This document shows, piece after piece, positions 12,469-64,000 of a DNA stretch of 64,000 bases (positions within the stretch are counted from its first letter, which is position 1; the number at the start of each line of letters is the position of its first letter). Source of the DNA: Blepharisma stoltei ATCC 30299 (lineage: Eukaryota; Protista; Ciliophora); contig CBFDEM010000064.1 of assembly GCA_965603825.1 (NCBI GenBank), forward strand, positions 310,001-374,000, written 5' to 3'. The notes beneath the pieces are model-generated. The model had not been told where the DNA came from. It did no database searches and worked only from the letters and a program-made list of their open reading frames with translations. Position numbers and translations under genes: made by a program.

Positions 12469-12656
12469 CCTGTTAGTCATTTTAATCTTATCAGCTAAGT
12501 TTTAGGCTAAAGAAATAAATGAGAATCAAAAAGCATGAATTTTGGAAAGAGCTATAAAATAACCTGTTAGTCATTTTAATCTTATCAGCTAAGTTTTAGG
12601 CTAAAGAAATAAATGAGAATCAAAAAGCATGAATTTTGGAAAGAGCTATAAAATAA
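12469..12656. repeat. Perfect 94-bp tandem duplication (12469-12562, 12563-12656)
   Basis: cctgttagtcattttaatc...gagctataaaataa occurs twice head-to-tail with no mismatch seen. Confidence 0.95.
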
Positions 12657-23029: not shown

Positions 23030-26000
23030 TTAGTTAAGCTTTTCAATCATTCCTGAAACATGCTCCATTGCTTTCATCATGTTTTCAAACTGATTTGCAT
23101 CAACGTTTTCCACAATTTTTTCCACCCTTTTAACTCTTGCTAGCAATGACTGCAAAGTCGCAGAAGAGTCCGCATAAGCTTTAACAGGGTTTCTCTTATA
23201 AACAGGTAAAGGACTAATTCTCAGTTTCGTCTGAATGTCCCACATTGGTTCATACAATTTCAATGGTTTATCAATTGGGTATTTAATGCTCAATTTTTCG
23301 TCTTCTTTATTTTGCATCATTTTCATGTTGTCTTCTTTATACTTGGCGATTTGTGCTTCTATCATTTGTTGATGCTTGGCTGATTTCATGTTAAGTTTCT
23401 CCTGCATTCTTTCTCGCTGTCTCTGCCTTTCTCTTTCCATTGCAGCTTCCCATTCGCTGGTTTCTTGTTGATGTTTCTTGATCATTTCTTCCATTTGTTC
23501 AGGCGAGATTCCTCTTCTTTTCATTTCTTCAATCATTTGTTTTTGACGGTCTGCCATTTCTTGCCGTCTTCTGTCCATTTCAGCGAGTTCTCGTTTTTTG
23601 GCGTCAGCGTCATCAAGCTCTTTTTGCAGTGCAGAAATTTCGTTTTCTCTTTCACCTTGCATTTGATTTAGCTGAGCTTGGCGGCTATCTAGCTCCCTCA
23701 GTTTATTTTCATACTCATTTTCAGCTTGGTTTCTCAGTTTATCAGCTTCACTTTGGGCTTGTCTGAGGTGTTGGTCTAATAATGCAGGGTTTGCTGACCT
23801 CATGCTTTGGAGGATATTATAAGTGTCTTGCAAATGCTTATCAGCGAGGTCTAGAAGTTTCTGACGGAATTCGCTTTCGACTTCTCTCCAAGCTTTATCT
23901 TGTTCTTTATTCAAATTATTAATGAAATTATAGTCAGCAATAGTCATGGCGTCAGCTTCTTTTTTCTCGAGTTTGGCGAGTTCTGAGACTTTATTGTTCA
24001 TAGGAAGGCTTGATTTTTCTATTTCTGAGCGTTTTCTGTTGAATTTATTTCGGATGTCAGCAATTTCGTCAGCTTTTTGAGAAAGGGCAAGCTGAAGGAT
24101 CTCTGTTTGTTTTTCTGTGAGTTTGGCTTGCTTTTTGGCTGAAATTGCGGCGAGCTCAGTTTCATGCTTGTCGTCCATCATGTCTTTGATTTTTCTGGCG
24201 ATTTCTTCTGGGCTTGCATTGCTTCTCATGAGCTCGTCAAGCCTGTTTCTTGTGAGGTCGTCTTTTAAGTTCTCAGCTTCTTTTTCTTGTTTGTCTTCAA
24301 CTACTTTGCGCTCTTCTTCGTGCTTTCTCTTTAGTTCAGCTTCTTTTAAGGCACGAAGTCGCTTTCGTTCTTGGAGCCTTGAATCTAACTGAGAGTGCTG
24401 GTTGCTGTTATCTACTACTGAAAGGTGCTGGAATTGTTCAAGCTCTTTGAGGAGCTGCTTTCTTTCATTTTCGTTTGTGGACGATCTCAAAGCGGTTTCT
24501 AAGCGAGATTTTTCGTCTTCACGGCTTATTGGAAGTTCTTGTTCGACTTCATCTGCAATAGCTTGGAATTCTTCAGCTTGCTTTTCATACAGTATTTGCA
24601 TTTCTTCTTCTTGGCGCTTTTCGAGCTGCTCCACATGGACTTGGTCTTCTTCTTTGAAAAATGTAGGCACTAGAGAAGTTTCTGGCTGCTTTATGGTGGT
24701 CATTCTCCTTTCAAGTCTTGGTGCTACAACTTCTTCTTTAAACTTTTTATCTTTTCTTGCCCTTAGTCTAACTGCTAGCTCTGCTTCTTGTCTCTTTTTG
24801 TCTCCATTCAGTCTGTTTTCAAGCTCTTGCACATTTTCATCATATTCTTTTACAAAGGCATCAGCTTCTTTTTTATTTTTGGCAGTTTTAAGTTTTGCAT
24901 CTAAATCTTCTTTGAGTTTTCCAGCTTCTGAATTTATTTGTTTACTTGTTTTGACGTCAATCTCCTTTTTCTTTTCGAAGAATTCTTTAGCTAATTCAGG
25001 GTCTTTTTTAATGAAATCTAAGGTTTCAGCAATTTCTGACGGAGATTCTATTTGGCTTCCGGCGTTTTTCTGTCTTCGTTTAGCAGCTCTTTCCATAAGC
25101 CTTTTATTTAAGGATTCCTGAGACTTTGATTTTTCATTGTCAAGGGCAAGCTCAATTCTCTGGATATTTGCATTGAAGTCAGCGATTAAGTCTTGCTTGT
25201 CTTTTTCACTGAGTTCAGGATTATTTATAATGCTATCATAAAGAAGGTTTTTCCCAGCCTCTGTCTTGTAGTCTGCTTCTTTGATGTATTTACTTAATAA
25301 GCCATTCATAACTTTTTGCATTTCTTCTTCAGGGCTAAGTTGGAGCTGTGCAGCTTCTTCTTCTTCCTCGTTGTCACTTATATCATCCAGACCTCCAAGA
25401 GTCTCTTCAAGGTATTTCTTTAGCTTAGCAAGATTATTCAATAAATGTCTCATCGCTTCCTGCTCAGCTTCAGTCTTTTGCATAAATGCAGCTTTGGCTT
25501 GGCTATCCTGTTCAACCAGTCTATCATACATTGCCTGGAAAATAGAAGGATCAATATCATCATTTATCATTGGCTCATTGTTTTCCTCTTCCTTAATAAC
25601 TGTTTTCTTCTCAAGTCTGACGTCACTTCTTACTTCTTTCATGCTTTCTTCATCACTTGAATCTTGTTTTGGTTTTTCTGTCAAAATTGCAATATCTAAT
25701 TCATTTTGTTTATCTCTATAAGCTCTTTTTCTTTCTTTCGTGACATATTTCCATGCTTTATTGTGGAAGAAGTAAATACCTAATATCAACAAAACTACAA
25801 GACCAACCAGCCAGCATGCAGTGCCAATGATGAATGGCCAGTTAGGGTCTTGAATAATGTTAGTTTTGGTTTGTGTCCCCATAGTCAGCATAGAGCTCTT
25901 AAAACGTGGGCGGATTGGGATATCTGGGTCTAAACATTGCTGGCCTTGCCCCATAACTGAAATAATGATATGCTTAGAATCGTCAGCTGCGTCTTTGAAA

Positions 26001-29000
26001 TCGTATACTCCTTGCTCTGTAAAAGTGAAGGCAAAAGACGTGATATTGTTCAGCGGATTTTCAATCATACGTTTTAGTTCTTGGAATGCTCCATAATCAA
26101 ACCCATCATTTGTATTCAATAAAGAATCTTTGACATAAATAGGGTAGTTTTGAGCATTTGGAATGGAAAATACAAAGGTTTCTTCTATTTGTATACAAAT
26201 GGTAGGATTTGAGACTGTAGTTGAGGATTCAGCCAGATATCTTCTGGAGGTAGAATTGCTATAAAGTGAGCCGAGCTTGTTTCCTAATCCATATACTCCT
26301 AATGGGCCAGTTGTTGTCATATCAATGCTATACACATTGCAAGAGCTTGACGAGCAGCTTGTTTTTCCATAGTATCCGCTGCTGTTCACCAAATCAACAG
26401 TTGTGGTTTCACCAGTGCTTGGGTCAGTTACTGTATAAGCTCCATTCGAATAAGTCGTTTTCAGTGAGTTTTCTCTGCAGTTCTTATTGCAAATGTCATC
26501 AATTGTAGTAGTTCCGTCACATTCACAGAGTCCAACCCCACTCATTCTTTTTCCAGATCCACCGTTACATTCAGAAGAACAGCTTGAGGTAGACACACAG
26601 TTTCCGTATGAGTCTCTTATACCGCTTTCTCCACAGTAGTCATATACAATATTAAAGCAGTCAATATCAGAATCGCCTTGACTTGATGTAATTCCATCCT
26701 GTATGTAATGGTAATTAGGGTTACAGACACAGCTGCCATCAGTTTTACGGTATGAGCGGTTTTTACCATAACATAAACATGTAGTGCTTTTTACATCAGC
26801 GTAGGCATTAGAGCCACATGGCATGCATTTAGCTGAGCCAGTAGTATCTGCATAGGTGTTTTTAGGACAGTCAATGCAGGCATCGTAGCTCGTTTGAGCT
26901 GTTGTAGGGTTATAAGTAGCGGCTGGACATGCTGTAGGAGTTTTAGAGCCAACTGGGCAGTAGTAGCCTTCAGGACATTCATAGCCTCCATGATATTCTA
27001 AAGAAATAGGATTAGGTCTTGAAGCTCCAGACACACAGACATAGCCACCAAAGCAGCTCTTGCATTTAGAAAATGTCCCATCTGAATAAGTCCCTGCAGG
27101 ACAAAGCACACATTTATTGCTAGAAACATAGTATCCTTGAGTGCATTGCAAAGGTTCAAAAGAGCCTGATGGACATACATAGGTGTCAGGGCAAGACACA
27201 GGAGGTTCGTCTGAGTCTTGGTATTGGTCAAGATTGCTTTGGTCGTACTTAGGACAATAGTAGCCTGATGGACAAAGAGTAGGCGTGGCAGTATTTACTT
27301 TGCAGTAATAGCCGATAGGACACGCTTTAGAGATAGGAGAGCCTTTAGGACAATAAGTACCAGCTTCGCATGAAATAGCTGAAGAGGAAGCTCCTGGGCA
27401 ATAATATCCTCCAGGACATGCAATACAGTCATCTATAGAAGCAGCAGTAGTTGACGACGAATAAGTCCCAGGAGGGCAAGGAGTAGGCTCAGTGGCACCG
27501 ACTACACAGTAATAGCCGACTTTTCCACATGGGTACTGAGTATAATCTCCAGTTCCAGTCCTCGTGCACAAGTATCCGCCAGGGCATGCTAAACAAGCAG
27601 ATAAATCAGTAGCCCCAGCCTTGCTTCCATAAGTTCTTGTAGGGCATGGTTTTGGCTTATTGACTCCTTGAGGGCAGTAGTATCCCATAGGACAAGAAAT
27701 TGGGTTAGGGTTCCCATTGACACAATAAGACCCAGGAGGACACTGTGTGCAATCACTCGACTGTGCGCCTCCTACAAGTGTTCTAAATAGCCCTGATGGA
27801 CAAGCAGTAGAGATTAGTGCCCCTTTGGTACAGTAATTTCCTGATGGACATTGATAGCCATATGCATTGCTGCCAGTTGGCGTAGGTGTTGGAGACGCTA
27901 AAACGCATAAGTAGCCAGCCTCACATTCGTCAGAAATTCGACCATCAACACAGTAGCTACCGGCTGGACAAGAAGTACAGTCAGATGATTTGGTTAAGCC
28001 AGTAGTCGCAGAGTTATAAGTACCTGCTAGACATAGAGGAGCAACACCTGTATTTTTAGGACAATAAGAATAGATTGGACAAGTGGTGCTTGTAGAACTA
28101 GAGCCATAGTCACAGACAGAGCCTGCAGGGCAATCATCACAAGTAGAATGGCCAAGTGTTGATGCATAATATCCAGCAGGGCAAGGAAATTCAATATCAA
28201 ATCTGGTTCCAGATGGACAATAATAGCCTATAGGGCAAGCAGTTGGGACATTTGTACCACCAGAGCAGTAATTAGTTAAAGTGCACTGATCGCAAGAACT
28301 CTTAAGAGTATCAAGTTGATAATACCCCATATCACACAAAACTTCTTCAAAACTTCCTTCTTCGCAATAATGTCCAGCAGTGCAGCCATTTTGAGTAGCT
28401 ATGCTTGAACCTCCACTACAATAATACCCAGCACTGCAATCTCCAGTGACTGCTGTAAGACCATCTGTTGCACAATATTTTCCGTATGGACAGCTTGGGC
28501 AGTCGCTTGATTGTTTAAGACCTTTACTTACACTCATAGTCCCTGCCGGACAATTAGTCTGACTTGAAGCTCCGGCTGCACAGTAAGTCCCAGCGCTACA
28601 TATATTTCCTTGAGTGCCATCTAAAGGCACCGCTGTTGTTGAACTTGAACCGCACCAATAACCTTCATTGCAGGTACTAACAGGAGCTGAAAGGCCTTGC
28701 TGATTGCAATAGGACCCAGCTGTACAAGCAGTGTAGGTCCCTGATCCAGCGGCACAATAAGATCCTCTAGGGCAGATACCGCCTTGGCTTGAAGTAACTG
28801 GCCGGTCTATAACAGCTCCAGTTATGCAGTACCATCCTGCAGCACAATCGCCTGTTGGTGCTGAAAGCCCTGCTGTCTCACAATATTTACCAGCATCACA
28901 TAGTACGCAGGCATCTGACGTTGGTTGACCTGGATCTGGATTATAAGTTCCGACTGGGCATGGATATGTATATTGATAGCCAGTACCACTAGGACAATAA

Positions 29001-32000
29001 TGCCCAGCTGGACAGTCAGTTTCTGCAGTGGCTGGAGATTCACAGTATTTTCCTTCTGAGCAAGTTTTGCATGTGCTTTGCATTGTCTGATCTTGATATT
29101 GTCCATCAGGACATTTAATTGGTTCCCAACTTCCTGTCGGACAATAATATCCAGCACTGCAGAATGTGCTTGGAGTGGCTGAAGAATCACCACCTGCACA
29201 ATAGTACCCGGCTGGACACGCAGTTGGGGCATTTGCTGGGGAAGATGTAGCAGGATATGAAGTTCCTGTTTGGTCGCAATAGAATCCTGGAGGGCAACTA
29301 ATACATTCAGTTGAATCTTCAGCTCCTTTATAAGGCATATATTTCCCAGCTGGACAAGCTGCATAGGTGCTTGATCCTGCCTCACAATAATACCCTTTAG
29401 GACATATATCTCCTGCCGAAAAGGCTGAGTTCACCGAAGAGATAGGGCTTGGAGCAATAGATTGAATCGTGCAGTAGTAGCCAGCTGAACATTGAGAACC
29501 TGATGTAGACATTTGGTCTTGAGAGCAGTAATAGCCTGGATCACATTTAGTAGTCGTTGAGGATGCGGCAGGGCAGTAATATCCTCTTGTACAAATCCCT
29601 CCATATCCAGAGCCAGTCATTGGTTGCGAATAAAGTGAGCCTGAAGAGCAATAAAACCCGCCAGCACAGCTTAATGATGTAAGATCGCCTACACCATAAA
29701 CGTCACAATATTTCCCAGCAGAGCAACTTATACAGGTGGTGCTGTCAGCAGCTGACGTTGCTGTACTAAAAGTCCCTGGGGAGCATGGGTATTGCTTATC
29801 ATAAAGAGTACTTGAAGGGCAGTAGTGGCCTGCTGGGCAAGTATTGGATGTGGGGTCAGAAGTTCCTCTTGGACAATACAATCCAGCTGTACAGGCGTTG
29901 CAAGATCCTTGGCCAACTGAATTTTGATATGTCCCAGGCTCACATTTTATATGGTTTGCAGAGCCACTTGGACATCTGTATCCAGCTTCGCATTGAGTTG
30001 CTTGATCACTTGAGCTTGATTGTGGGCAGTAATAATTAACCTTACAAACTGTGTTGTCATTTACATTGGCAGTGTTAATGCATGCTCTCCCTGCCGTACA
30101 AGGGATACAGTCACTGCTTGAAGCTCCTAATGTAGAAGGGTTGAATGTCCCTGCAGGACATGGATTCGCATTTCTAGAAGTAGATCCAGCTGGGCAATAA
30201 TAACCTGCAATGCATGGACCATATTTATCAGTCGTTGTATCAACAAGATAAGGAGGTGTCTGGAATGGTGATGCAAGCTCGCAGAAATACCCTGCACTGC
30301 ATTGGCCACTTTCAGCTGATAAGCCATAGCCAGCACAATAATATCCAGCTGTGCATGGGGTGCACTCTGATAATTGAGTAGCCCCAGTTGTGGCTCGGAA
30401 AGTCCCAGGAGGGCATGGTATTGGGTCAATAGTTCCTGACGGGCAATAATGGCCTGTAGTGCAAGTAGTTGTGGAAGTTAGCCCAGTAGTTTGGCAATAA
30501 GCTCCTGCATCACATGTTTGACAACTTCCTTGCCCGGCAGCAGAATTATAAGTCCCTCTTGGACAATTAATAGAGGCATAGCTCCCGGCAGGTGCATAAG
30601 TTCCTGCAGGTGTTTCCTTTCCAGATGGGGTACTTGATGTTTCTTTTGTGCCACACAAATAGCCAGCACTGCATTGTCCAGTAGGTTCTGCAGAAGTTGT
30701 GCTGGAGCAATAAAAGCCTTTAGGACAGTCAATACAGTCACTGCTGGACGTTGCACCTTGGTAGTTATTGAAAGTTCCACTAGGGCATGGCTGAAGAGTT
30801 GCAGTTCCTGTAGGGCAATATGACCCAGCAGGACAAATATATCCATAAGATTGGCCAACTGGAGTAGCTGTTATTGATTTTCCAGCGCAATAAAAGCCAG
30901 CCTTGCATTCTCCTGCAGTTTCAGTACTGCCTGGTTGATCACAATATCATCCTGCATCACAGCTTGTGCAATCAGAAAGTTTAGTTAAATAAGTACTTCC
31001 GCTGTTGGCGTGGTAAGTTCCTGCTGGGCATTTAACTGGGGTGATGGTGCCTTTAACACAGTATTTTCCCGCAAGACAGTCGCTAGGAGATCAGGTGGCT
31101 TCATATGGACAGTATTTTCCTTCAGGGCATACTACGCAATCAGTTGAGGCTGATGCACCATCTGATGGGTTATAAGTTCCCGCTGGGCAAGGGATAGGAT
31201 CGCTAGTACCTGTTGGGCAATAGTAGCCTTTTGGGCACGTAGTCCCACTTCCGGTATTTGCAAAAGTATCAAGGTACTTTCCTGATGTTGATAATGTTGA
31301 GCAGTCACTAAGTGCCGTGGCGCCAACAGTGCTTCTATAAGTTCCTGGTGGGCATGGATAAGCGACCAAAGTACCAGACGGGCAGTAAAAGCCCTCTTTG
31401 CATTTTGTAGAGTCTGAAGAAGAACCCCAAGGGCATAAGGATCCTGCTGTGCAAGGAGCTGCATACATTGCTGTGCCAGTTGTTGTAATACTCGAGCATA
31501 TGTAACCAGGAAGGCATAGAAGAGGCGCTGTTGCTCCTGCATTGCAGTAATAGCCTAAATCACAAACTGTTGCTGCTGTATTTACAGTTGATGAAGGATC
31601 TGGACAATAATACCCTGCAGTACAAGTGGTGCAAGATGCCAGACTTCCTGCACCAGTAGATGCCATAAAAGTCCCGGGAGGGCACTTATATTGTTTAGTT
31701 GCCCCAGATGGACAATAATACCCTGCTGCACATTCTCCAGTGTATGATATCGATGTTGAAGAACAATCAGATGCTTGCGTTAAAGAAGTGCTTGAAGAAT
31801 AGGTCCCAGCTGGACATGCAAATTGGTCAGGCCTTTCTGTGCCATCAGGGCAAAAACTCCCAGCTGCGCAGTCACCATTACTATTGGAGAGGTCAAATGT
31901 CCCTGTCATACAAGCTTTTCCTGCAGTGCATTGAGTACAGTCTGAGCTATCAGTATTTGCAGTAGAAGATGAGTAGTATCCTGGAGGGCATGCGAAATAA

Positions 32001-35000
32001 TTACTCATAGGTGTTCCAATAAGACAGTAAAATCCAGCAGAGCATGAAGCCCCTGTCGAGCTTGTACTTTTGGCTGCACAATAGGTTCCTGCAGTACATT
32101 CTAAGCAATCTGCAACACTTGCAGAGCTTGTAGAGGTTGCAGATAAACTATAATAACCAGCATCGCAAGAATATTGGTCAATTGTATATGACCCATAAGG
32201 ACAGAAATACCCTGCACTGCATGAAATTGCGCTTGATGGATCATAACTAGAAGCAGGACAAACAGCAGCTGAGCTTGAAATCCCACAAATTTCACATAAA
32301 GACGACGTAGTTTTGGCAGTAAATCCTAAATAGCATAAGGCTGGTGATGGGAATCCATTGCCGCAGAATGTATAAGTAGAGCAGGTACTGCAGCTAGAAA
32401 TGCTTGTTTGACCTGTATTGCTGTTATAAGTGCCTATAGGGCATAATATTTCAGATTTAAAGTCCTGAGAAAAGCGGCCTGCGGATGTTGAAGAAGGGGT
32501 TGCTGATGTTCCTTCAGGACAGAGCTGTCCTGCTGTACAAGCAGTGCAATCAGCTCCAGTCGCTCTTGGAATAATATCATCCGAATAAGTCCCAAATGGA
32601 CAATTAAAAGTTTCTGAGTCACTCGCTCCGTTAGCTGCAAACTGACCTTTATTAGAAGTAATACATTTAGGACTCCCTGACCCTCCATCATTAGAGCAGC
32701 TCCCACTTGCTGGTATAGCATCAGTATAAGTTGGACAGGCAAATCCAGGCAGACATAATTTGCACATAGAAATATCTATAATTCCTGAATTCTCATTATA
32801 AGTTCTTGCAAGACAGTATATAGCTGTCGTCGTAAGAGGATTTAGGACTTGTGAAGAAGATGACATGTCAGCTAATGGAGTTGATGCCCCTGAGTTACAA
32901 AAACAGCCAGGCGAGCAGCCATAGCAAAGGTCAAACCTTCCAGGCGAAAAAGTTCCTTGTGAGCAGGCAGTTTGGCTTGTTGTAGATGTATATTTATAAG
33001 AAGAGTCTATATAACTACAAGTGCCACTCGCATACATTGGAAACATACAAGTTAAGCACACAGGACCCCATGGATACGAAGGGCTTGCACATGAAGTTGT
33101 CCCGCTTGTCCAGCACCCAGTTGTGGTAGAACACTCTGTACAACTATTTGAGCTATAAGTAGTCCCTGAAGGACAAGTATAAGGGTTGAAATTGAATCTT
33201 ACACTGCAGACTTGACTAGAAGGACAATTAGTGACTGCATTTGAAGAAATATATTTCCCTTCTACTGCTAAAGAGACCGAATAAGTACTACAAGCTGCAC
33301 TATAAGGGCAGGATTCACAAGTATTGTACCCTGAAGGCGAATAGTCATAGGTTCCTGAACATGTGGTAGGAGAGGACTCATAATTGCAGTATTTTCCTGC
33401 TGTACAAGTAGTGCAAGAAGTCTGGGAAGTTGAGGAGGAATAGGAGCCTAATGGGCATTTTAGCTCTTCTTGGATGTTTGTTTGAGGACACATGTCGCCC
33501 GCTTTGCAAGAAGTTGCGGAAGAGCTGCCTGATAAAGAATAGGAACCTGAGGATACAGCTGTAGGGGATGTAGAAGAAGAGTCAAAAACGTAGCCTTCAG
33601 CGACTTTAGTGCAGGAGGTCTTGCCTGTAGCAGTTTGATAATGCCCAGATGGGCAAGAATATTCATTAACCCCATCAGGACAGTAGTAGCCAATAGGGCA
33701 GGTAACGCATGAGCCTGAGCTATAATAAGTCCCTGGAGAACAAGGTACTGGAACTCCGCTCGACACATCAAAATTCGTAATAGTGACTGAACAAGTTGTA
33801 GTAGCTGTCCAGTCATAAGCAGCTGGTGTACACAAGTTTACAACGTCAACTGTTGTTGAAGCTGATAAGCCGTTATAATTGTTATCATAAGAAGATGTTG
33901 TGTGAGAAATTGAGACTGTATAGTAAAGATTTGTCATAGAGCTAGGAACGCTATTTACAGTCACTGTCACTGTTTGTGCAGTCGCGTAGTTAGAATTAGT
34001 AAACGTCAATGGTGTTGGTGAGACTCCAACATTGCTATTTCCTGATGAAATCGAGACAGTTACATCATCTGAGGGCTGGCTTCCTAGCCAAACTGTATAT
34101 GTCCCAGACTGTGATTCTGATAAATCTAGGAAGTTGTTTGAGAGTTTTAAGGATCCATATGAGCTTTGTATTACAGTCACAATAGTTTCAAAAGTAGATG
34201 GCATTTTTATTGCATTAGTCCAAGCTGTGTCAGCGTTTAAGGAGTAAGTAAGTGTATAAGAAGTAGAACCAACAATGGTAGAGGAGCTTACAGATTTTAC
34301 AGTAAAAGTCTCTGAAGACCATGAGCTTGATGTAAAGGTCACTGTGGCTGGAGATACAGTGATATCAGAACTCGATGCAGATACACCAATTTCCACATTA
34401 TTTATTGGCTGCATGCTGAGAGAAACCTGATAAGTAGCAGTTCCTCCTTGGGAAACCACAACGGAGTCTTCAACAGTGATTACAGGGTCTTGGTCATATA
34501 TATACAGCGTAGCTAATCCAGAGGGGTAAAAGCTGGAATCATAAATAACATTTGCACTATTTCATGTGGTATCTGAGCTTGATAGCGAGTGTGAGAGCAC
34601 TATAGAGTAATCTAATGAAGACGTATAATAATAAGGAAGGTCAATTGTAACAGATTGATAAGTGTTATAATTTCCATTCGTAAAAGTAAGGCTTGCAGTG
34701 TTCACTACAAGCTCGCTTGATGATGTTGTTGTAGAAATGGTTACTGTTACATCAGAAGTTGGAGCAGTTCCACTCAATTTAATTTGATAAGTCTGAGATG
34801 TAGCACCTTCATGGATATAAGTTGGGAAATTGATTAGTATAGCATTTACGTTAGAAATTGTCACTGACGCTGAAGATGAGGCAGTGCAGCCTGTGCAAGT
34901 GATGTCTAAAGAGTAAGATCCTTGGGTTGATATGCTAGCTGAAACTGCCCAAGTGCCACTTCCTTGATTTGTATAAGTAGCTGAAGATAATGCTGACCCT

Positions 35001-36607
35001 GAATGATAAGTTAAAGAAAGCCCTGCAACTGGACCCAAATAGGCGTCACTATCTGTATCTGTTACTGATACGTATAGAGTAAAAGTTGCTCCAGGAGAGG
35101 CTGTTAGTGAAGTGGTTGTAAAAGTAGCTGTGCTTATAGTTTGAGTCACTGAAAAGGAATTGCTGAGACAATTTTTGCCTGATGAGTCAGAAGCTTCTAG
35201 CTTAAATGCTGTATCAGTTCCAAGGATTTTGCAGGTACTCCAAGAGCTAGCGACACCAGATGATAAAGATCCAGTTACTGTAGTAGACTTAAATTTCCCG
35301 ACTTGTCCTGATGTAGTTGCAAATGCAATTAGGGTGATGGTGCCAGAGGCTGAAGTTGCGATATTTCCATATTGATCGTATGCAGTTACTGCTGCACCAC
35401 TACATGCATTACCTGAAGGCTGACCTGTAAATGCAATATAAGAAAAGGTATCTTCAGTGATAGTGATGCTTATTGAATCTTTGGTAAAACCAACACAGTG
35501 AGCTTCTATAGTAAAAGTGCCGACCTATATTAATTTTACCTTAGTTATGGATACAGAAGTAGAGCCACTGGAAGAAGAAGAATAAGAGATTGATAAGGTT
35601 CCGAATAGATTTGCTGTTGAGTCAGTTGAAAAGAGGTAGACATTGCTGCTATCTGAAGTTGTGAGAGTATCTGTATAAGTGTATTTTTCGACTGTTACCG
35701 ATATAGTGGCGCCAGCTGCATAGGTGCCTGATCCGGAAGTGATTTTTAAATAATTTCTGCAGCCACTGATATGGCATTGAATGCATGCATTGGATGAATC
35801 GACGTAATACCCTGAAACACAAGCAGTGCAAATGCTTTGGTCTGATCCATCACACTTTTTGCAATGTGTTGGGTCTGTGCATGCCTGGCATACTCCACCC
35901 GAATCAGCACCATAATAATCGGCACAAGTAGTGCAAGTTCCAGGGTTTGATCCATCGCAGGTTTTGCAATATGTTGAGTCTGTGCATGCCTGACATACTC
36001 CACCCGAATCAACACCATAATGATCAACACAAGTAGTGCAAGTGCCGGGGTTTGATCCATCACAAGTTTTACAATATGTTGAGTCTGTGCATGCATGGCA
36101 TGCTCCACCCGAATCAACACCATAATGATCAACACAAGTAGTGCAAGTGCCAGGGTTTGATCCATCACAGATTTTACAATATGTTGAGTCTGTGCATACC
36201 TGACATACTCCACCCGAATCAACACCATAATGATCAACACAAGCAGTGCATGTGCTTTGGCTTGATCCATCACAGGTTTTGCAATATGTTGAGTCTGTAC
36301 ATGCTTTGCATACTCCATTTGAATTTACCCCATAATAGTCAGCGCAAGTAGAGCATGTTGGATCCGAAGGGCAACTAATGCAATTTATATCTGTACACAC
36401 ACTCAAGATTCTTTTCTTGCCTGATCAATTATTTTCTTCTTTAGGCAGTTTTTGAGTAGCTGGAATACTTTTGGGTGATGATGTATTGTTAGCATTTAGG
36501 ACTCCGAAGTCCAAACTTGAGTTCAGAGTATTTGATCCCATCACTTGATCGTTGAGAAAGGCTAGAAGCAGCCAAGCAATGATCATCTTTAACATTTTAT
36601 AAATCAT
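23030..36607 (-). CDS. Giant (~4,520 aa) single-pass membrane protein: signal, furin-like Cys repeats, Ser/Thr-rich beta-sandwich repeats, long GCC2/GCC3-type CPxGxYC array, TM helix, ~900-aa cytoplasmic coiled coil; one 15-nt intron at 35525-35539
   Basis: Track ORFs 36425-36607, 35525-36406, 34562-35149, 31091-34459 and 23030-30658 are in one frame, joined by TGA(W) (e.g. CDAG-TGA-YC) and the intron gtaaaattaatatag. TM is WPFIIGTACWLVGLVVLLILGIYFF. Confidence 0.88.
35800..36345 (-). repeat. Coding tandem repeat, 105-bp (35-aa) unit, ~5 copies
   Basis: ACTDSTYCKTCDGSNPGTCTTCVDHYGVDSGGVCQ units; atgttgagtctgt recurs every 105 bp (35971, 36076, 36181, 36286). Confidence 0.9.
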
Positions 36608-37199
36608 CCCATTTTGTTTAAGAAAAGTTTAAATTACTAGCTTGTTCGGTTACCTTTTCCACTTTTCTACTATTATGACAGAATTATATATTCTCTTAAT
36701 CTGAGCTTAATATTTAAATATACCCATCTATCCAATTTTTTGGGATGTTCAATTACAGGGAATTTTCTATACTTACTGATAATAAAAGTCGTTCGCACAG
36801 AAACTCAAGCCAAATAATTTTTAGTGACCAGATTTAATTTATCATAATGTTTATATATGCTTGCCTTTTTATTATTTATCTTACCAAATTCGCAAATCCA
36901 TCTGCCAATGCATATTGGCCGATTTATACAATAATTTTTTACTTTGATTGTATTTCGAGCATATATAAAATGACGACAAGGCGCACCCAATTTCTTGATG
37001 CAATTTCTCAGCCTCATGTCCACAGCGAATTCGGCAAGAAAACATTAAAGAGTAAAATATCATAACTAATAACTTTGAAAAATTTTTGATTTCATTAGCA
37101 CATAGGACTGTATTTTGCTTTAAACTAGAGAGAAAATAGTCTATTTTTGCTATGAGAGTTTAAATTTGGGTTCAGAATCTAATTATTTAAATGATAAGG

Positions 37200-52286: not shown

Positions 52287-52324
52287 TTTTATTATATCTA
52301 CTTAAGATATAGGATTTTAGTAAA
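52287..52324. promoter_or_regulatory. 38-bp head-to-head intergenic region (putative bidirectional promoter/overlapping 5' UTRs)
   Basis: Lies between ATG 52286 (-) and ATG 52325 (+). Confidence 0.55.
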
Positions 52325-53317
52325 ATGGAAGCAGAAAGAAGGATTGAGCACGAAAGGACAATCATGGACCCAAATGTAGAAATCCTCACAGTTAGATGAA
52401 ATCCTGATGACTCTCATATCGCCTCCGCCTGCAGTGACGGCACTGTCAAAATTTACTCATCAGTAAGTGGAAGCTTTATAAGGACTTTGAACTGTAGAGT
52501 CGGGACTGGGCCAGTCCCTATTACAGGGATCCGCTGGAGACCTTCTGCTTCCTTTGGAAAAACCAAAAACATCTTAATCGCCCTGACTGTAGAAGGAACT
52601 ATCATGCATTGGCATGCGACATCTGGAAAAACGCTTAACACTATCAAGCTAGACTGCCAAACCTTAAGCTTAGACTACGACTATGAAGGAAAACGCTTCG
52701 CTGTCGGCTGCTCTGATATGAACATAAGGATTTACGACGAGTCTACTAAAGAAGTCATCTCTAATTTAGTCCCAGGAATGGGTGAACTGCTTGGCCATGT
52801 AAACCGCATTCATTCGGTAAAGTTTCTCAGCGACAATATGATAGTCAGTGGAGGGTGGGATAATAACATTTTACTATGGGATATCCGAAGTGGAGCTGTA
52901 GCAAGAGGAATGTATGGCCCTCAGATAGCTGGAGATTCAATAGACTCGACCTCAAACTTGATTTTGACTGGCGGGTATCAGATTTCTGATCAATTGCAGC
53001 TTTGGAGAGTTGATGATGCGTCTTTGGCGTATTCAGAGACTTTGAGGTCAAGTGAAAGAGCTTGTATGGTTTATTCGGCGCAGTTTAGTAAGCATGACTG
53101 TGGAGCTATTTTTGCACTTGGCGGGGCTGGGTGTGATGAAGCTTATTTCTATGAGACAGCGTCTAGAAGACGGTTCGCTGTTTTAAATAACTTGGTAAAG
53201 CCTATTTATTCTATTGATTTTGCAAATTATTCCAACAGGGTTGCAGTTGGAAGTGGAGATGGAAGCTTGAGGATGCTCAGTGTTTTAGAGCCAACAGTAG
53301 TTGATCAAGAAATATAA
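52325..53317 (+). CDS. WD40-repeat protein
   Basis: ATG 52325; TVR(TGA)NPD..ASACSDGTVKIY, GHVNRIHSVKF..VSGGWDNNILLWDIR, AVGSGDGSLRM. Confidence 0.9.
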
Positions 53318-54017: not shown

Positions 54018-54884
54018 TAATAATTTCGAGACCAATTTAATTAATATTAGCCACTTTTGATTTAGATATTTTCTATTCTATTTACAAGATAAATAAAATA
54101 TATCTGTTATAATCAAAGAATATATATTTACTTAGAAAATTATCCAGAACCGCATTGAAGTTACTGATTTATATGATTATCTCTCTTTTACAAAAATAAA
54201 ACATATAAGAATATTGAGGATTATTGATCTGCTCATTTAAAAGTTGACTTTTAAAATTTATATAAAATAGAATAATTCTAAAAATTTCAAAAATATTAAA
54301 AAATTATCCTAATTACTATTGCTTATCTTCATGACCGGGTTTATAAGCTTCCCAATTCAAATACACAAGCGGGAAAGTAAAGCTCAAACTAAACAAAACA
54401 ACTTAGCAGCTACATAATAAGTTTCCCAATTTTAGCAAAAATAAAATCACCTAGATATAATTTACATAAAAATAAATCAATATTGCTCACGTCAAAATCG
54501 CTAAATGTGTCGCCAATCTATGATAAAACCAAAAGAAAATAAAATACCTGAATATCCCTTGTATAAAAGGAATGACTTTGATCTTAATTGATAACTTCTT
54601 GTAAATCTTCCACGAATAATAAGAGCCAGCGAGGCTATTACCCAATCAAGTAATGCTGAATCCAAAGTAATGCATACTCCCTAGGAGTGTAAGATTTCAG
54701 CCGCAGGCCAAAAAATTGCAATTGCTTTGACTATTAATTACGGCACCCAAGAAAGGGAGATAATTTTGGAAAATGACCTTTTAGATTTTAGGGAAGATAT
54801 GACGAAATGAAGATAGCTTTGGGATAAGTTGACAAGTAGGCGATGACTAATTATAAAAATCAGTCTCCCTGCAATAGACTTTGT
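54018..54884. repeat. Direct duplicate of ~58121-59010
   Basis: Collinear shared words: agaccaatttaattaa, tatatgattatctctcttttt, ttattgatctgctcattt, acgtcaaaatcgctaaa, actattaattacggc, aatagactttgta. Confidence 0.88.
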
Positions 54885-55307
54885 ATTAGTGGTTGTCGCG
54901 TCTGAAAAGTAAGAAACTTTTAAGGTGCCATCCTTAGTTGATGAGACAATATAATGTGCGCCAGTGTCAGATCCGAATTGAAAAATTTTGTCACTAATAG
55001 TTTTTTCAAAGCTTACCCAAAATCCAAATGCGTATTCTGAAGGAGTGATTAAACTGGATGTGTCTGTTGTTAAGCTCCAGGTTTGAGCACCGTCCAGGCT
55101 TGCTGAATAGCAGCTAACATATGGATCTAGACTACTACCATCATCTGCAGTTATATAAGGAGAATTGCTATCTACAGTAGCAATGCCAGTAGGTAGAGTA
55201 TCTTCTGTTGCTTTCAAAAGATACCAAGATGCTGATTGAGTAAATCCCTTGTCAAATAAAAAGAGAGCGAGGACGACGAGGATATTTAGCGGCTTTGAAT
55301 AAACCAT
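54885..55307 (-). pseudogene. 5' half (141 codons) of family member C, on the minus strand
   Basis: MVYSKPLNILVVLAL...EYAFGFWVSF...SDATTTN is collinear with member B. Homology ends at AAT 54885-54887, and the ORF runs on into unrelated sequence to 54738. Confidence 0.85.
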
Positions 55308-55595
55308 TTTTTTTATAAGCAGTTTTATCTAACTTTTAGAAATACTTGTTAAGAATTTTAATAGTAAATTTTATTAAGAAATGCTTTGATTTTTTTTCAA
55401 GTTAATGAATTGGAAAGCTAGGAAAGAAATTATAAATTACTATAATGCAGCTCCAGTCTTGCTTTAAAATTAAATAAAATATCTGTAATATTACTTAGCT
55501 TTGAAAACGCCACAAATGCCTATATTTAAAACTAATTTTTTGCTTAAAGATAGTGACAAGGATTTGGATATTCAATTTCTTGTCCCTTTTGAACG

Positions 55596-56589
55596 AATCC
55601 AGCTAATGACATTTCCTTCACTGTCCCTTTAAGTAATTTCTATACAGACAAGTTTTTCCTTATTGTGTTTCACTTTAAAGATAGCTCAGGCACCGTTACT
55701 TTAGAGGTTATATTGCCTGGCAAACCCCGAATTCCCAAAACTTCAGGAAGCTCAACTCCTGCTTTTGCGATGCCTGGTGGGGTATTTTATTTTGGAAAGT
55801 CAGTTAAGGGAAAGTTCGTTAGCATTCTTCTTGCAAAGAGCGCTACCATAGATGATACCTTTAATACAATAACATTAGATGATGGCTCAAATCCTTATGA
55901 TATAGCAGTGCCTTGCACTTCTGATGTAACTTGCATTGATAGTGTATGTCTTAATATGGGCTCAGAAAATGTATGCTTATCATCAATGCAGTATTGCGCT
56001 GTTTGTACAGCCACCGAGTGCACTACTTGTGAACCTGATTCAGCTAGAGATGAGGATACTTTTTGCACAACTTGTAAGACTACTAATGAAATTAAAAATG
56101 GGCACTGTAATTTCTACATAGGTTGCGCCATAGCCAACAATTGTGCTGAATGCTCAGCAAAAAGCACTCAATGCGATGTATGTGAGGCTGAATACTTCCT
56201 TTATGACGATAGTGCTACTTCAACATCTTGTCTTTGTAAGATTTTATTTAGCTTGTACTGACTCCTGCACTAGTTGTGAGCCAGGTCCTGATTGCTATAC
56301 TTGTGCTACAACAATAACTCAAACAGGAACTACTTGCCGAGTCGATTCTATTGGATACCAGGTGAGCGCTGATCTTCCGAATATCGTATTTGACTTTGCT
56401 CATCCTCTTTCAACTGGACTGTCGAAAAGTTCATTTAAAGCTACTTCAAACTCAGGTGCAGATATCCCAACAACTGGATGGACTATAACTGGCTGCACAG
56501 CAAGCTTGAAACAATGCAAAGTTAATGCTCCTAATGTTCAAGAAAGCGATTTCCCAATAACACTTGACGTTGAGTTTATTCAAGCCTAG
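55596..56589 (+). pseudogene. 3' half of family member C, on the plus strand; introns 56107-56121 (15 nt), 56236-56251 (16 nt)
   Basis: NPANDISFTVPLSNFYTDK...LDVEFIQA* is collinear with member B from the exact point where the minus-strand half stops. No internal lesions. Confidence 0.85.
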
Positions 56590-56728
56590 TCTCTTTTAGG
56601 GTAACTAACCTTTTCTCAAAAACCATTAAACCTTCTATTAATTTATGTCAAGGATTATAATATAAGCATTCAATGTATACAAAATTCTTGGAAAAGCAAA
56701 ATAATAACCTAAGAAGTCCATATATAAT

Positions 56729-56870
56729 ATGGACAATATCTTCAAGATCCTCGACGAAGACAGCGATGCAGAACCTGTGTCAATCCAAGAAAAGGCAAAA
56801 GACGCCAAAAGAATCACCAGAAGCGGCATTGATAAATCTAAATCCCAATTAAATCAAAAGCAATAGTATT
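56729..56870 (+). pseudogene. Truncated inverted copy of gene X (53738-53995)
   Basis: MDNIFKILDEDSDAEPVSIQEK... then a 1-nt deletion (aaatct-aaatccc) and truncation. Confidence 0.85.
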
Positions 56871-57801
56871 AAAGATATTTTTTGGTGGGGATTTTGCGAA
56901 AGACTATGTAAAAATATTATTTAATTCACCAATAATAAATTCTTAATTTTATAACACTTCAGTCTAAGACACCAAAAATTTCCCAGCACTATCTTAATTA
57001 AAGCAAAAATTATTATAATTTAAGAACATCTACTTTACTAGTTAGATTAAAAAATAGTTCAGCTTTGAATAGAAGAAATACCGTAAATTTAATAGTCAAA
57101 CGTAATTGGCTTTAAATTCATCTAAAATAATCTGGCTAATTATTGAATTTTTATTACGAGCTCTACCATTTAAAATATAACTATATGTAAATGGTGCAAG
57201 AAGCGTTTTAATAGTTTAATTAAGGATAATTATTTAGATTCAAATATATTATGACATTGGTTTATAATCTCACACATTAGGTGATTTTTGCACAAGCAAA
57301 ATATATTTCTTTTGCCAATCTTTCTGACAGAGCTGCCTTCAAAAATTTTAGGCTTAATCTAATAGAAAATTAAAAATTGAGCCTTATACCAAATAGGCTA
57401 GATTTAATTTTGATATCGATTTATTTTCTTTAGTCTAAGAATTAAGCTTATAAATAAATTAAAACGGTGCAGGAATCGTTCCGACCTCTTAACTGCTCAG
57501 CTAATGATGGAAAGTGGCTGAGAACCTTGACAAAAGAAGCGCAGCGTTAACACGCATATCCAATAACGTCGTACAGACGTAGTAAGGCAGAAATCATGAT
57601 AAGATCAGCGAGGAATCAATTGTTGGAGTTATTTTTTTTTCATGGGTGGTGGAGCATAAAGTTTAAAAAGGATTCTCATAGCAGTAACTTAGGATGTTCT
57701 AGATCATTCAGGAAACTTACTCATCGTGATACATTGCATATTTGTTTTGAGTTTTTTTGTTAGTTAGCAGCTTATTCAAAAATTCATGCTTTTTGATTCT
57801 C
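56870..57801 (-). repeat. Distal part of the family upstream block (homolog of ~12610-13640)
   Basis: Reverse-complement match to the block upstream of member B; same-strand match to ~63130-63990. Confidence 0.82.
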
Positions 57802-59149: not shown

Positions 59150-59920
59150 TCATGACTTTGAAATTTAGAGTCGGGACTGGGCCAATCCTTATTGCCAAGG
59201 ATCCGCTGTGATCTTCTGCTTCCTTTGGAAAAACCAAAAAGATCTTAATCGCCCTGACTGTAGAAGGAACTATCATGAATTGGCATGGGACATCTGGAAA
59301 AATGCTCAATACAATTAAGTTAGACTGCCAGACTTTAAGCCTAAACTACGAATATGAAGGAAACGCTTCGCTGCTATAGCGAGTCTACTAACGACGCAAT
59401 CTTTAATTGGTTCCAGGAATAGGCAAACAGCTTGCCTATGTGAGCCACATTCATTTGGAGAAGTTTCTCAGTGGCATTATGATAGTCAGTGGAGGATGGG
59501 ATAGTAGCATTTACTATGGGATATCCTAAGTGGAGCTGTAGCAAGAAGGAATGTATTGCCTCAGATAGCTGGAGACCAAATAGACTCAACCTTAAACTTG
59601 ATATTGATATGCGAGGGTCAGATTTCTGATCAATTTGCAGCTTTTGAGGGCTCACGATGCGTCATTGATATATTCAGAGACTATGAGGTCAAGTGAGAAA
59701 GCTTGCATGGTTTATTCGACGCATTTCAGTAATCATGACTGTGTAGATATTTTTGCATTTGGTGGGGGGGTGTGATGAAACTTATTTCTATGAGGCAGGA
59801 TCCAGAAGATGGTTGGCTTATTGATTAACTTTGTAAGGCCTATTTATTCTATTGATTTTGCAAATTATTCCAACAGGGCTGCAGTTGGAAGTGGAGATGG
59901 AAGCTTAAGAATGCTAAGTG
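59150..59920 (+). pseudogene. Degenerate copy of the WD40 gene (52480-53280)
   Basis: Near-identical stretches (agagtcgggactgggcca, cttaatcgccctgactgtagaaggaactatcatg, gcagttggaagtggagatggaagc) with multiple indels and stops. Confidence 0.92.
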
Positions 59921-62450: not shown

Positions 62451-62779
62451 TTAAGACCTATATGTGCATTTTGCAAGAGAGTTTGAAATCTTACCAGAAA
62501 ATTTTGATCAATAAAGACCCTTTAAAAGTGCTTTGACTCTCGACCAAAGCCATGGAGAACTTGTTGATTTCTCAAATGCTGAATGCTTTTATGTTAACCC
62601 CAGGAGCTCAGGAGTGATTTACATTGACAACAATTGCTCTCAGCTATCATTAATTAGCTGCAGCTTTATTGAAAGCATCACCGGCTTAGTTGGGCGTTAT
62701 ATTTTTTAGGCTAGTATTGTCAATTGAGTCTATTGCTTTTGATTCAAATATTTTCCTTTTCTTTTAGGAGGAGCTAAGG

Positions 62780-63990
62780 AAATTTTAGAAGCAAATTTTA
62801 TCAAGAAATTCTTTGACTGTTTTTCAAATTTATGAATTGGATAGAAATTATAAATTACTATAATGCAGCCTCAGCCTTGCTTTAAAATCCTAAATAAAAA
62901 ATCTTAATGATGCTTATCTTTGACAAAAATAAAGTTGGGCTATATTTAGAACTAATTTTTGGGTTTGAGTGTAGGGATAAAGGATTTCGGATAATCAAAA
63001 TTGCTAGTGCCTTTTGGACGAATATAACCCTTTATTACAGCCCACGCCAATATTCAATTTCTAATAAAGAAATGGCTTCTAATGCAATATTTAATCCTAA
63101 GCGATATTTATAAATCTTAATTTGAGATAATTTTGGAGAGGATAGCTTTTTTGCCGAGAAAGATGCTACGAGGACAATTTTTTTTATTCGCCAATAATAA
63201 ATTCTTAATTTTATAATAATTCAATCTAAGATGCTAAAAGAATCAGCATCCAGTCTCCTAATGCTGTCTTAATTAAACCAAAAACTTAGGAAAATCTAGT
63301 TCTACTAGCTATAGGACATAGGAAACTTAGTGTTTTTTAGATTAAAAATGCATTAGCTTTGAATAGAAGAATACCCCTAAATTTAATATCAAATCCGTAA
63401 TATTTTAAGTTTATCTGAAATTAAAAAAATGCAGCTGCGAATAAATTTAGATTCAAATATATCCTTACAATTAGTTTAAAGTCCCACATATTAGACAGAC
63501 TTTTTTACAAGTAAAATTCATTTCTTTTGTCAAATCTATCAGAGAGAGCTGTCTTTAAAGATTTTAGGCTTAATCTAATAAAAATTAAAAATTCAGCATT
63601 ACTGGTCCCAAATAATCTAGCTTTAATAAATTCCAAGTTTTGATAAAGATTTATTTTATTAGGTCTGCAAATTAAGCTTATAAATTCATTAAAACGGTAT
63701 GGGAATCGTTCCTAACTCTCAATTTCTGCAGCTGATGACTGAAAATGGTCTGGATACTTTGAAAAAATAGCGACGTGTTGATATATGTATCCAGAAAAGC
63801 CAAGAATCAATGTGGGAGTATTTTCTTAATGGGAAGGAGAGCAAAAAGTTTGAAAAGAATTCTCACAGCAGTGACTTAGGATGTTTCTAGGTCATTCAGG
63901 AAACTTACTCATCTTGATGCTAGACATTGCAGTTTTAAGCTTTCATTTTATTTAGTAGCGGGTTCAAAAATTCGAGCATTTTGACTCTCC
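62780..63990 (-). repeat. Orphan copy of the family upstream block with no family CDS attached
   Basis: Matches 55340-55598 and 56870-57800 on the same strand and 12610-14000 as reverse complement. The sequence where the ATG should be (~62750) is unrelated. Confidence 0.82.
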
Positions 63991-64000
63991 ATTTAAGGCG

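Follow-up and report, generated by a model that had tools for sequence, protein, structure and literature searches.

One paralog of a secreted-protein gene family in the ciliate Blepharisma stoltei was most probably killed by a recent, germline-fixed, multi-break rearrangement, which left a young dead copy and not a gene that is unscrambled; we would put the probability of this reading at about 0.85. The copy survives as two halves on opposite strands, each of them intact, and the sections below consider how they came apart, whether they are ever rejoined, and what the locus now produces.

Sequence and data

The window (64,000 nucleotides, C64:310001-374000; the telomere tract starts ~23 kb away) is sequence of the B. 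stoltei somatic (MAC) assembly, which comprises 41.46 Mb in 64 contigs, ends in CCCTAACA telomeres and is read with TGA as Trp. The somatic assembly of ATCC 30299 is virtually homozygous, with introns of 15-16 nt (PMC9942806). Positions below are those of the window unless a contig is named.

Assembled contigs from four public runs, coded X2, X5, X8 and X12 and with their identities inferred, were aligned to 54100-57500 at 90% identity or more, a threshold that lets contigs of paralogs align to the split locus too. X2 and X5 are DNA runs and X8 is an RNA run; X12 is probably strain HT-IV, 4-9% divergent at the locus. Contigs lose rare variants, and the absence of a branch in them is therefore sensitive to common states only. 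IESs, the excision of which has been described for B. stoltei (PMC9942856), were mapped with the published MAC+IES hybrid assembly, which places them near the locus at 54681, 54953, 55471, 56700 and 56869; the surroundings resemble the published description in carrying ~1 IES per kb, with TA/TAT repeats. Two of these elements deserve a line each:

54949-54953, no strand: 1874-bp IES with 186-bp terminal inverted repeats (90% identical), inside the 5' half and 68 nt from the junction J1
55461-55471, no strand: 562-bp IES with an 11-bp direct repeat and 38% GC, into which X5 reads

The first has an ATATA direct repeat and no long ORF, and comparison of its ends with the Bogo and BstTc1 repeats gave no match. 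Since the hybrid assembly takes its order from the MAC, it cannot reveal a different germline order, and X5 thus becomes the independent test. Contigs of X5 stop at or enter the listed IESs: one begins at 54949, and another, of 1161 nt, is made up of 523 + 562 + 76 nt. Its entry into the 55471 element, together with a contig that begins at the 54949 one, identifies this run as germline-dominated. IESs of 250-570 bp with direct repeats of 10-16 bp instead of TA are found at 55471 and at C64:293431, 305808, 326077 and 329375.

Two intact halves on opposite strands

54885-55307, minus strand: 5' half of the secreted-protein gene, 141 codons, from the ATG at 55307 to the AAT at 54885
55308-55598, minus strand: proximal upstream or promoter block, still joined to the 5' half
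55596-56589, plus strand: 3' half, 314 codons after the AAT, stop at 56587-56589

The 5' half encodes a hydrophobic N-terminus and the first half of a predicted LamG/ConA-like β-sandwich, and the homology of its upstream block to the upstream regions of paralogs ends exactly at 55598. The 3' half has neither promoter nor signal peptide, and public annotation treats it as a separate gene of 267 aa starting from an ATG at 55770. The first-pass annotation had described two intact halves, and comparison with six intact paralogs bears this out in full: the coordinates stand, the halves are in exact codon register without gain or loss, stops and frameshifts number zero in both, and all 26 of 26 Cys are kept. 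Its mention of 'both micro-introns' was correct as to their presence and wrong as to their number, for the 3' half holds three (55633-55647, 56107-56121 and 56236-56251). The one that had been overlooked, at 55633-55647, is an in-frame 15-nt intron that is removed in all five annotated paralogs, and the rejoined protein had consequently been given as 460 aa; with this intron removed the pieces, which we analysed separately, total 455 aa as a piecewise sum (141 + 314). Flipping 54885-55598 would, as had been proposed, yield an open frame, but it would not restore the ancestral locus, because a third junction exists. The description of nearby duplicates as decayed also agrees with what we find, the neighbours carrying multiple frame-breaking indels.

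The gene family and its predicted fold

The family has about ten copies, of which at least eight besides the split one are near full length, all near contig ends; both halves share 76-85% DNA identity with at least eight paralogs. Frames are open in the six modelled paralogs and in a more distant copy at 9.5 kb of the window, and are shifted in the paralogs at C64:384k and on C52. The B. stoltei relatives bear the UniRef names 'TNFR-Cys domain-containing' and 'Lectin', and a Pfam search with each half, and with the read-through tail alone, gave no match. In a weak structure model of a paralog (mean pLDDT 47), residues ~52-240 form a LamG/ConA-like sandwich, for which the best structural match, with this low-confidence model as the query, was to LamG domains (Z 11.7, rmsd 3.1, 140 aligned). 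According to this model the break, at residue ~141-142, bisects the predicted domain; a cut at residue 141 is what distinguishes the split copy from the other secreted B. stoltei proteins of this LamG/ConA-like, Cys-rich type. We set aside structural matches to neurotoxin binding domains, as they reflect the common ConA-like fold at 7-11% identity and are uninformative on toxicity.

The dN/dS of the split copy is 0.81, against 0.63-0.93 for live paralogs, and neither this ratio nor counts of conserved sites tell it from them; at 0.7-0.9 across the whole family, dN/dS cannot date the death of the split copy. Elsewhere in the window, 62773-63995 holds just the promoter of another family copy; it stops at an IES of 101 bp (62776), one side of which, and not the other, has a C-rich end resembling Bogo. 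Loose ends of X8 RNA at 55037 and 55677 belong to family members absent from the paralogs of the assembly, which may be alleles of another strain or unassembled copies.

Ancestral order and three junctions

The paralog at C64:301516-303945 gives the ancestral order as distal upstream block, proximal upstream block, gene, and a neighbour, G2, which is already frameshifted. Written on the plus strand, an ancestral A..b-C-D-e-F has become A-D-inverted C-F, where C is the 3' half with the start of G2, D the 5' half with its promoter, and F the distal upstream block. Measured against the paralog order there are three new junctions (54885, 55596-55598 and ~56868), not two, with microhomologies of 1-3 nt:

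54018-54884, minus strand: decayed TMEM164-family duplicate and the flank 3' of it, the frame broken by 9 indels within 580 nt
54884-54887, no strand: J1, the end of the 5' half joined to the decayed TMEM164 copy, ~1 nt of microhomology, no IES
55596-55598, no strand: J2, the promoter block joined to the start of the 3' half, AAT microhomology, no IES
56590-56868, plus strand: 3' flank and first 45 codons of G2, displaced along with the 3' half and in the same order in C64:301516-303945
56867-56871, no strand: J3, the start of G2 joined to the distal upstream block, an IES site
56870-57801, minus strand: distal upstream block, collinear with the 5' half

The MAC lacks ~80-100 nt between the proximal and the distal upstream block. 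Homology confirms the earlier observation that the upstream block resumes near 56870, and the third junction near 56868, together with the paralog order, supports the preference for a complex event over a clean inversion. What does not hold is the AAT as a duplicated pointer, for the upstream block had its ancestral end in this AAT (55596-55598) as well: the promoters of four of five paralogs already read ATT at this point, so that the AAT at J2 needs no duplication. A microhomology of at least 3 nt has a ~7% chance per junction. Among the possibilities first listed, a very recent microhomology-mediated rearrangement is the one that fits, given the 3-nt AAT microhomology, the three junctions and the lesion-free halves.

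A TA is found at or next to each of the four break ends; this pattern has a 1-3% chance and was noticed post hoc. It is a weak hint at a TA-cutting excisase, and J1 and J2 are not TA-to-TA joins. A target-site duplication (TAA) of the Bogo transposon was considered and rejected, because the 3' half begins G-AAT and no TAA is kept. In the paralogs at C64:301k, 297k and 324k, no IES was found at the homologous break site.

An IES at the third junction

The published IES at 56869 measures 50 nt, of which 28 nt continue G2 and 22 nt continue the upstream block, the two meeting at TA. Two somatic forms of J3 exist, 5 nt apart, that of X2 being 5 nt longer than the assembly, and only excision between two TAT repeats accounts for the difference. 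A 4423-nt contig of X5 departs at 56869, and this run has no coverage of 56871. The somatic J3 is made in development, by excising germline-limited DNA with variable ends; at this point the germline contains either 50 nt or over 4 kb. Among the IESs of B. stoltei (PMC9942856) J3 is entered as one of 50 bp, and it differs from an ordinary one in consisting of two formerly MAC-destined flanks at a rearrangement junction, in having at least two somatic end forms, and in that it may conceal more than 4 kb. Here, then, formerly somatic sequence is excised as an IES at a rearrangement junction.

At 57127-57131, X2 and X5 carry differing single-base differences at low depth, and paralogs have ~117 extra bases there; this is possibly another variable excision, or a small deletion. 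At 54019 a 126-bp chimeric IES sits on an older rearrangement junction, with 36 nt that correspond to the end of the IES upstream of G2 and a remaining ~90 nt that are kept in the MAC at three paralogous places. That older junctions coincide with IESs (54019, 56869, 62776) carries no weight for us, as this is expected where IESs make up 24% of germline DNA.

The split state in DNA and RNA

J1 is bridged with zero differences by contigs of X2 (54100-54947, depth 88) and X5 (54678-54947, depth 131) and by X8 RNA (54486-55280, depth 6.4). The junction is exact in three runs from three studies, with both halves at single-copy depth, and as the germline-dominated X5 bridges it, J1 is a germline junction. 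The published MAC+IES assembly has no IES at J1 or J2, and contigs of X2, X5 and X8 show no branch toward the joined form at 54885-54917. Those of X2 and X5 end at 54947, as predicted by the 30-mers shared with the paralog at C64:375k; since they reach 54947 and do not stop at ~54914, a joined form of the split locus is not common. In X12, a 95%-identical copy of the left partner departs at 54881 into other sequence, and not into the 5' half. No contig bridges J2 among the contigs listed for 54100-57500; we infer this junction from the long-read assembly and from J1 and J3, which leave just two free ends. It had been suggested that finding only the split state and no junction transcripts would mark a fixed recent pseudogene, and that outcome is seen in the assembled contigs. 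Contigs of X2 and X5 both break at 55547, where the 30-mer is unique in the assembly, possibly owing to an unassembled paralog.

Is the gene rejoined?

Joints between opposite strands at 54888/55596 do occur among the aligned contigs, in both DNA and RNA. The two joined DNA contigs have an average single-copy depth and match two paralogs that lie 1-2 mismatches from the junction 24-mer. The joined RNA joint has a depth of 251; the sole RNA with at least 90% identity over 55126-55239 has a depth of 6.4 and enters the TMEM164 copy, and so the depth-251 RNA does not come from the split locus. We therefore rejected the joined contigs as a second state of the locus: they derive from the paralogs at C64:375k and on C11, and contigs of the locus itself are unbranched. 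The junction sequence first proposed as an RNA probe would return false positives, since it is one mismatch from C64:375682 and two from C11:9652.

These data bear directly on the idea of a nascent scrambled locus, split in the germline, in which the AAT would serve as a 'pointer' for an occasional inversion of 54885-55598 that rebuilds the gene in new macronuclei, for example with an intact parental macronuclear template. [quoted passage not shown] However, the MAC assembly, the X2 DNA and the X8 RNA are all split and unbranched, J1 and J2 have no IES, the AAT is explained by promoter ancestry, and the joined contigs fit the two paralogs, no highly expressed RNA reaching 90% identity over 55126-55239 (depth 6.4). 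We consider this very unlikely.

Scrambled genes require a difference between germline and soma and a joined somatic copy (PMC9797194). J1 is identical in X5, X2 and the MAC assembly; the locus's own RNA crosses J1 into the TMEM164 pseudogene; and where a pointer would be found twice in the germline and once in the soma, at MDS-IES borders, the AAT stands twice in both. The candidate loci of B. americanum consist of two large pieces on opposite strands (PMC6101598), and our locus shares with them, and with the scrambled genes of Oxytricha, Tetmemena and Euplotes woodruffi (PMC9797194), two large opposite-strand pieces, a short shared sequence and local paralogs. It differs from all of these in that the somatic copy is also split, the gene junctions have no IES, and no joined product of the locus is present among the contigs.

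A second possibility moves the event into the soma: breaks from IES excision in the developing macronucleus would have been mis-joined and somatically inherited, with the germline gene intact. The TA at or beside the four break ends, for what a post hoc pattern is worth, and J3, as a developmental join with variable ends, would suit such an origin. Against it, the germline-dominated X5 bridges J1 exactly and unbranched at depth 131, yet follows true IESs nearby, and neither J1 nor J2 joins TA to TA; we find it no more credible than nascent scrambling.

The read-through product

54738-54884, minus strand: read-through tail, 48 aa in the former TMEM164 frame, with its stop at 54738-54740

As the locus stands, a read-through ORF from 55307 to 54738 encodes 189 aa. 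The ORF behind the truncated product foreseen by the first-pass annotation is thereby substantiated, and it equals the public gene model. Its stop sits inside a 15-nt intron with a mutated acceptor, unspliced in the RNA contig 54486-55280. The partner has an apparently intact TMEM164-family relative at C64:386779-387447. With the 5' half joined to the TMEM164 duplicate in sense and in its old frame, X8 shows weak transcription of the 5' half into this dead copy.

Could this 189-aa chimera of LamG half and TMEM164 tail, or the 267-aa 3' half, be a retained functional new gene? Besides the sense and frame of the fusion, both pieces have RNA contigs and public gene models. A fusion in sense and in frame is, however, a 1 in 6 chance, the partner already had its nine frame-breaking indels, the cut bisects the predicted fold, and RNA depth is 4-6 against hundreds for the paralogs (contig depth being a poor measure). 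A new gene thus seems less probable still than either of the preceding ideas. Judged from the modelled fold, the 189-aa product, cut in the middle of the β-sandwich, is probably non-functional, with the intact paralogs supplying the protein.

A reversible two-state switch by inversion of 54885-55598, akin to phase variation, is scarcely believable. The segment does hold a promoter and the 5' half between ATT and AAT, as such a switch might; yet inverted identity at its ends is just 3 nt, against ~10 bp or more for recombination sites, DNA and RNA runs show one orientation, and a flip would leave the ancestral flanks unrestored at the third junction. Both this switch and scrambling, which the first-pass annotation had entertained, fall on the same facts: germline-enriched and somatic DNA share the split state, there is no joined branch, and the locus's own RNA enters the wrong partner. 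Misassembly into a chimeric contig, to which the lack of a J2-bridging contig among those listed and the 5 nt between assembly and X2 at J3 might point, is just as hard to believe: three runs, each from a different study, agree exactly on J1, X2 bridges J3 apart from those 5 nt (themselves explained by the TAT-bounded excision), and the halves are at single-copy depth.

Age, mechanism and meaning

Dead neighbours of the locus give a rate of decay. Their frameshifts number 3 in 1.4 kb (11.8% pairwise divergence), 5 in 535 nt (4.9%), 11 in 780 nt (14.5%) and 9 in 580 nt (12.9%), which amounts to ~0.5-2.5 indels that break the ORF for every 1% of divergence, per gene length. At this rate, zero lesions make the break younger, by our own estimate, than ~1-6% divergence, and such youth is enough to explain the intact halves.

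We picture the rearrangement in a telomere-proximal family of secreted, LamG-like, Cys-rich proteins that turns over fast, by birth and death. Both break ends at the AAT codon survive without loss, joined to different partners, and this suggests a real, physical double-strand break in that codon; at least two other breaks would also have been made, and end joining would have re-assembled the fragments in the wrong order. A single multi-break event or two overlapping inversions with a deletion might equally have produced the present arrangement, the two being indistinguishable, and the halves would be intact since too little time has elapsed. Microhomology end joining with deletion and inverted re-insertion, yielding a pseudogene in a birth-and-death family, is a known kind of event. 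The locus resembles such complex end-joining rearrangements in its three junctions with 1-3 nt microhomologies, its small losses, the retention of both break ends and the decayed duplicates around it; it differs in being in a ciliate, where one of the junctions falls within germline-limited DNA and is cut anew whenever a macronucleus forms.

As it stands, then, the locus would be an ordinary young pseudogene, and one negative data point on unscrambling in heterotrichs: the soma does not correct an inversion that the germline carries, even though the 3-mer there resembles a pointer. When transcripts from intact paralogs are mapped to such a dead copy, they mimic 'two large segments on opposite strands', a pattern reported as scrambling in B. 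americanum, and this may bear on those candidates (PMC6101598). Perhaps, as a long shot, the locus is proto-scrambled, with a TA-cutting domesticated excisase having made the germline breaks and new macronuclei rebuilding the gene at low frequency, by a 714-bp inversion, when given a parental template, as in crosses with an intact strain. Were the locus indeed to re-join in crosses, heterotrich unscrambling would have its first direct evidence.

Three further features of the window were recorded. An intact WD40 gene at 52313-53314 has a decayed duplicate at 59154-59920 with 11 frame-breaking indels. A perfect 94-bp tandem duplication, 100% identical, occupies 12469-12656, and a minus-strand ORF of more than 4100 aa (TGA = Trp) runs over 23033-36628, with a 105-bp tandem repeat upstream at 35816-36445.
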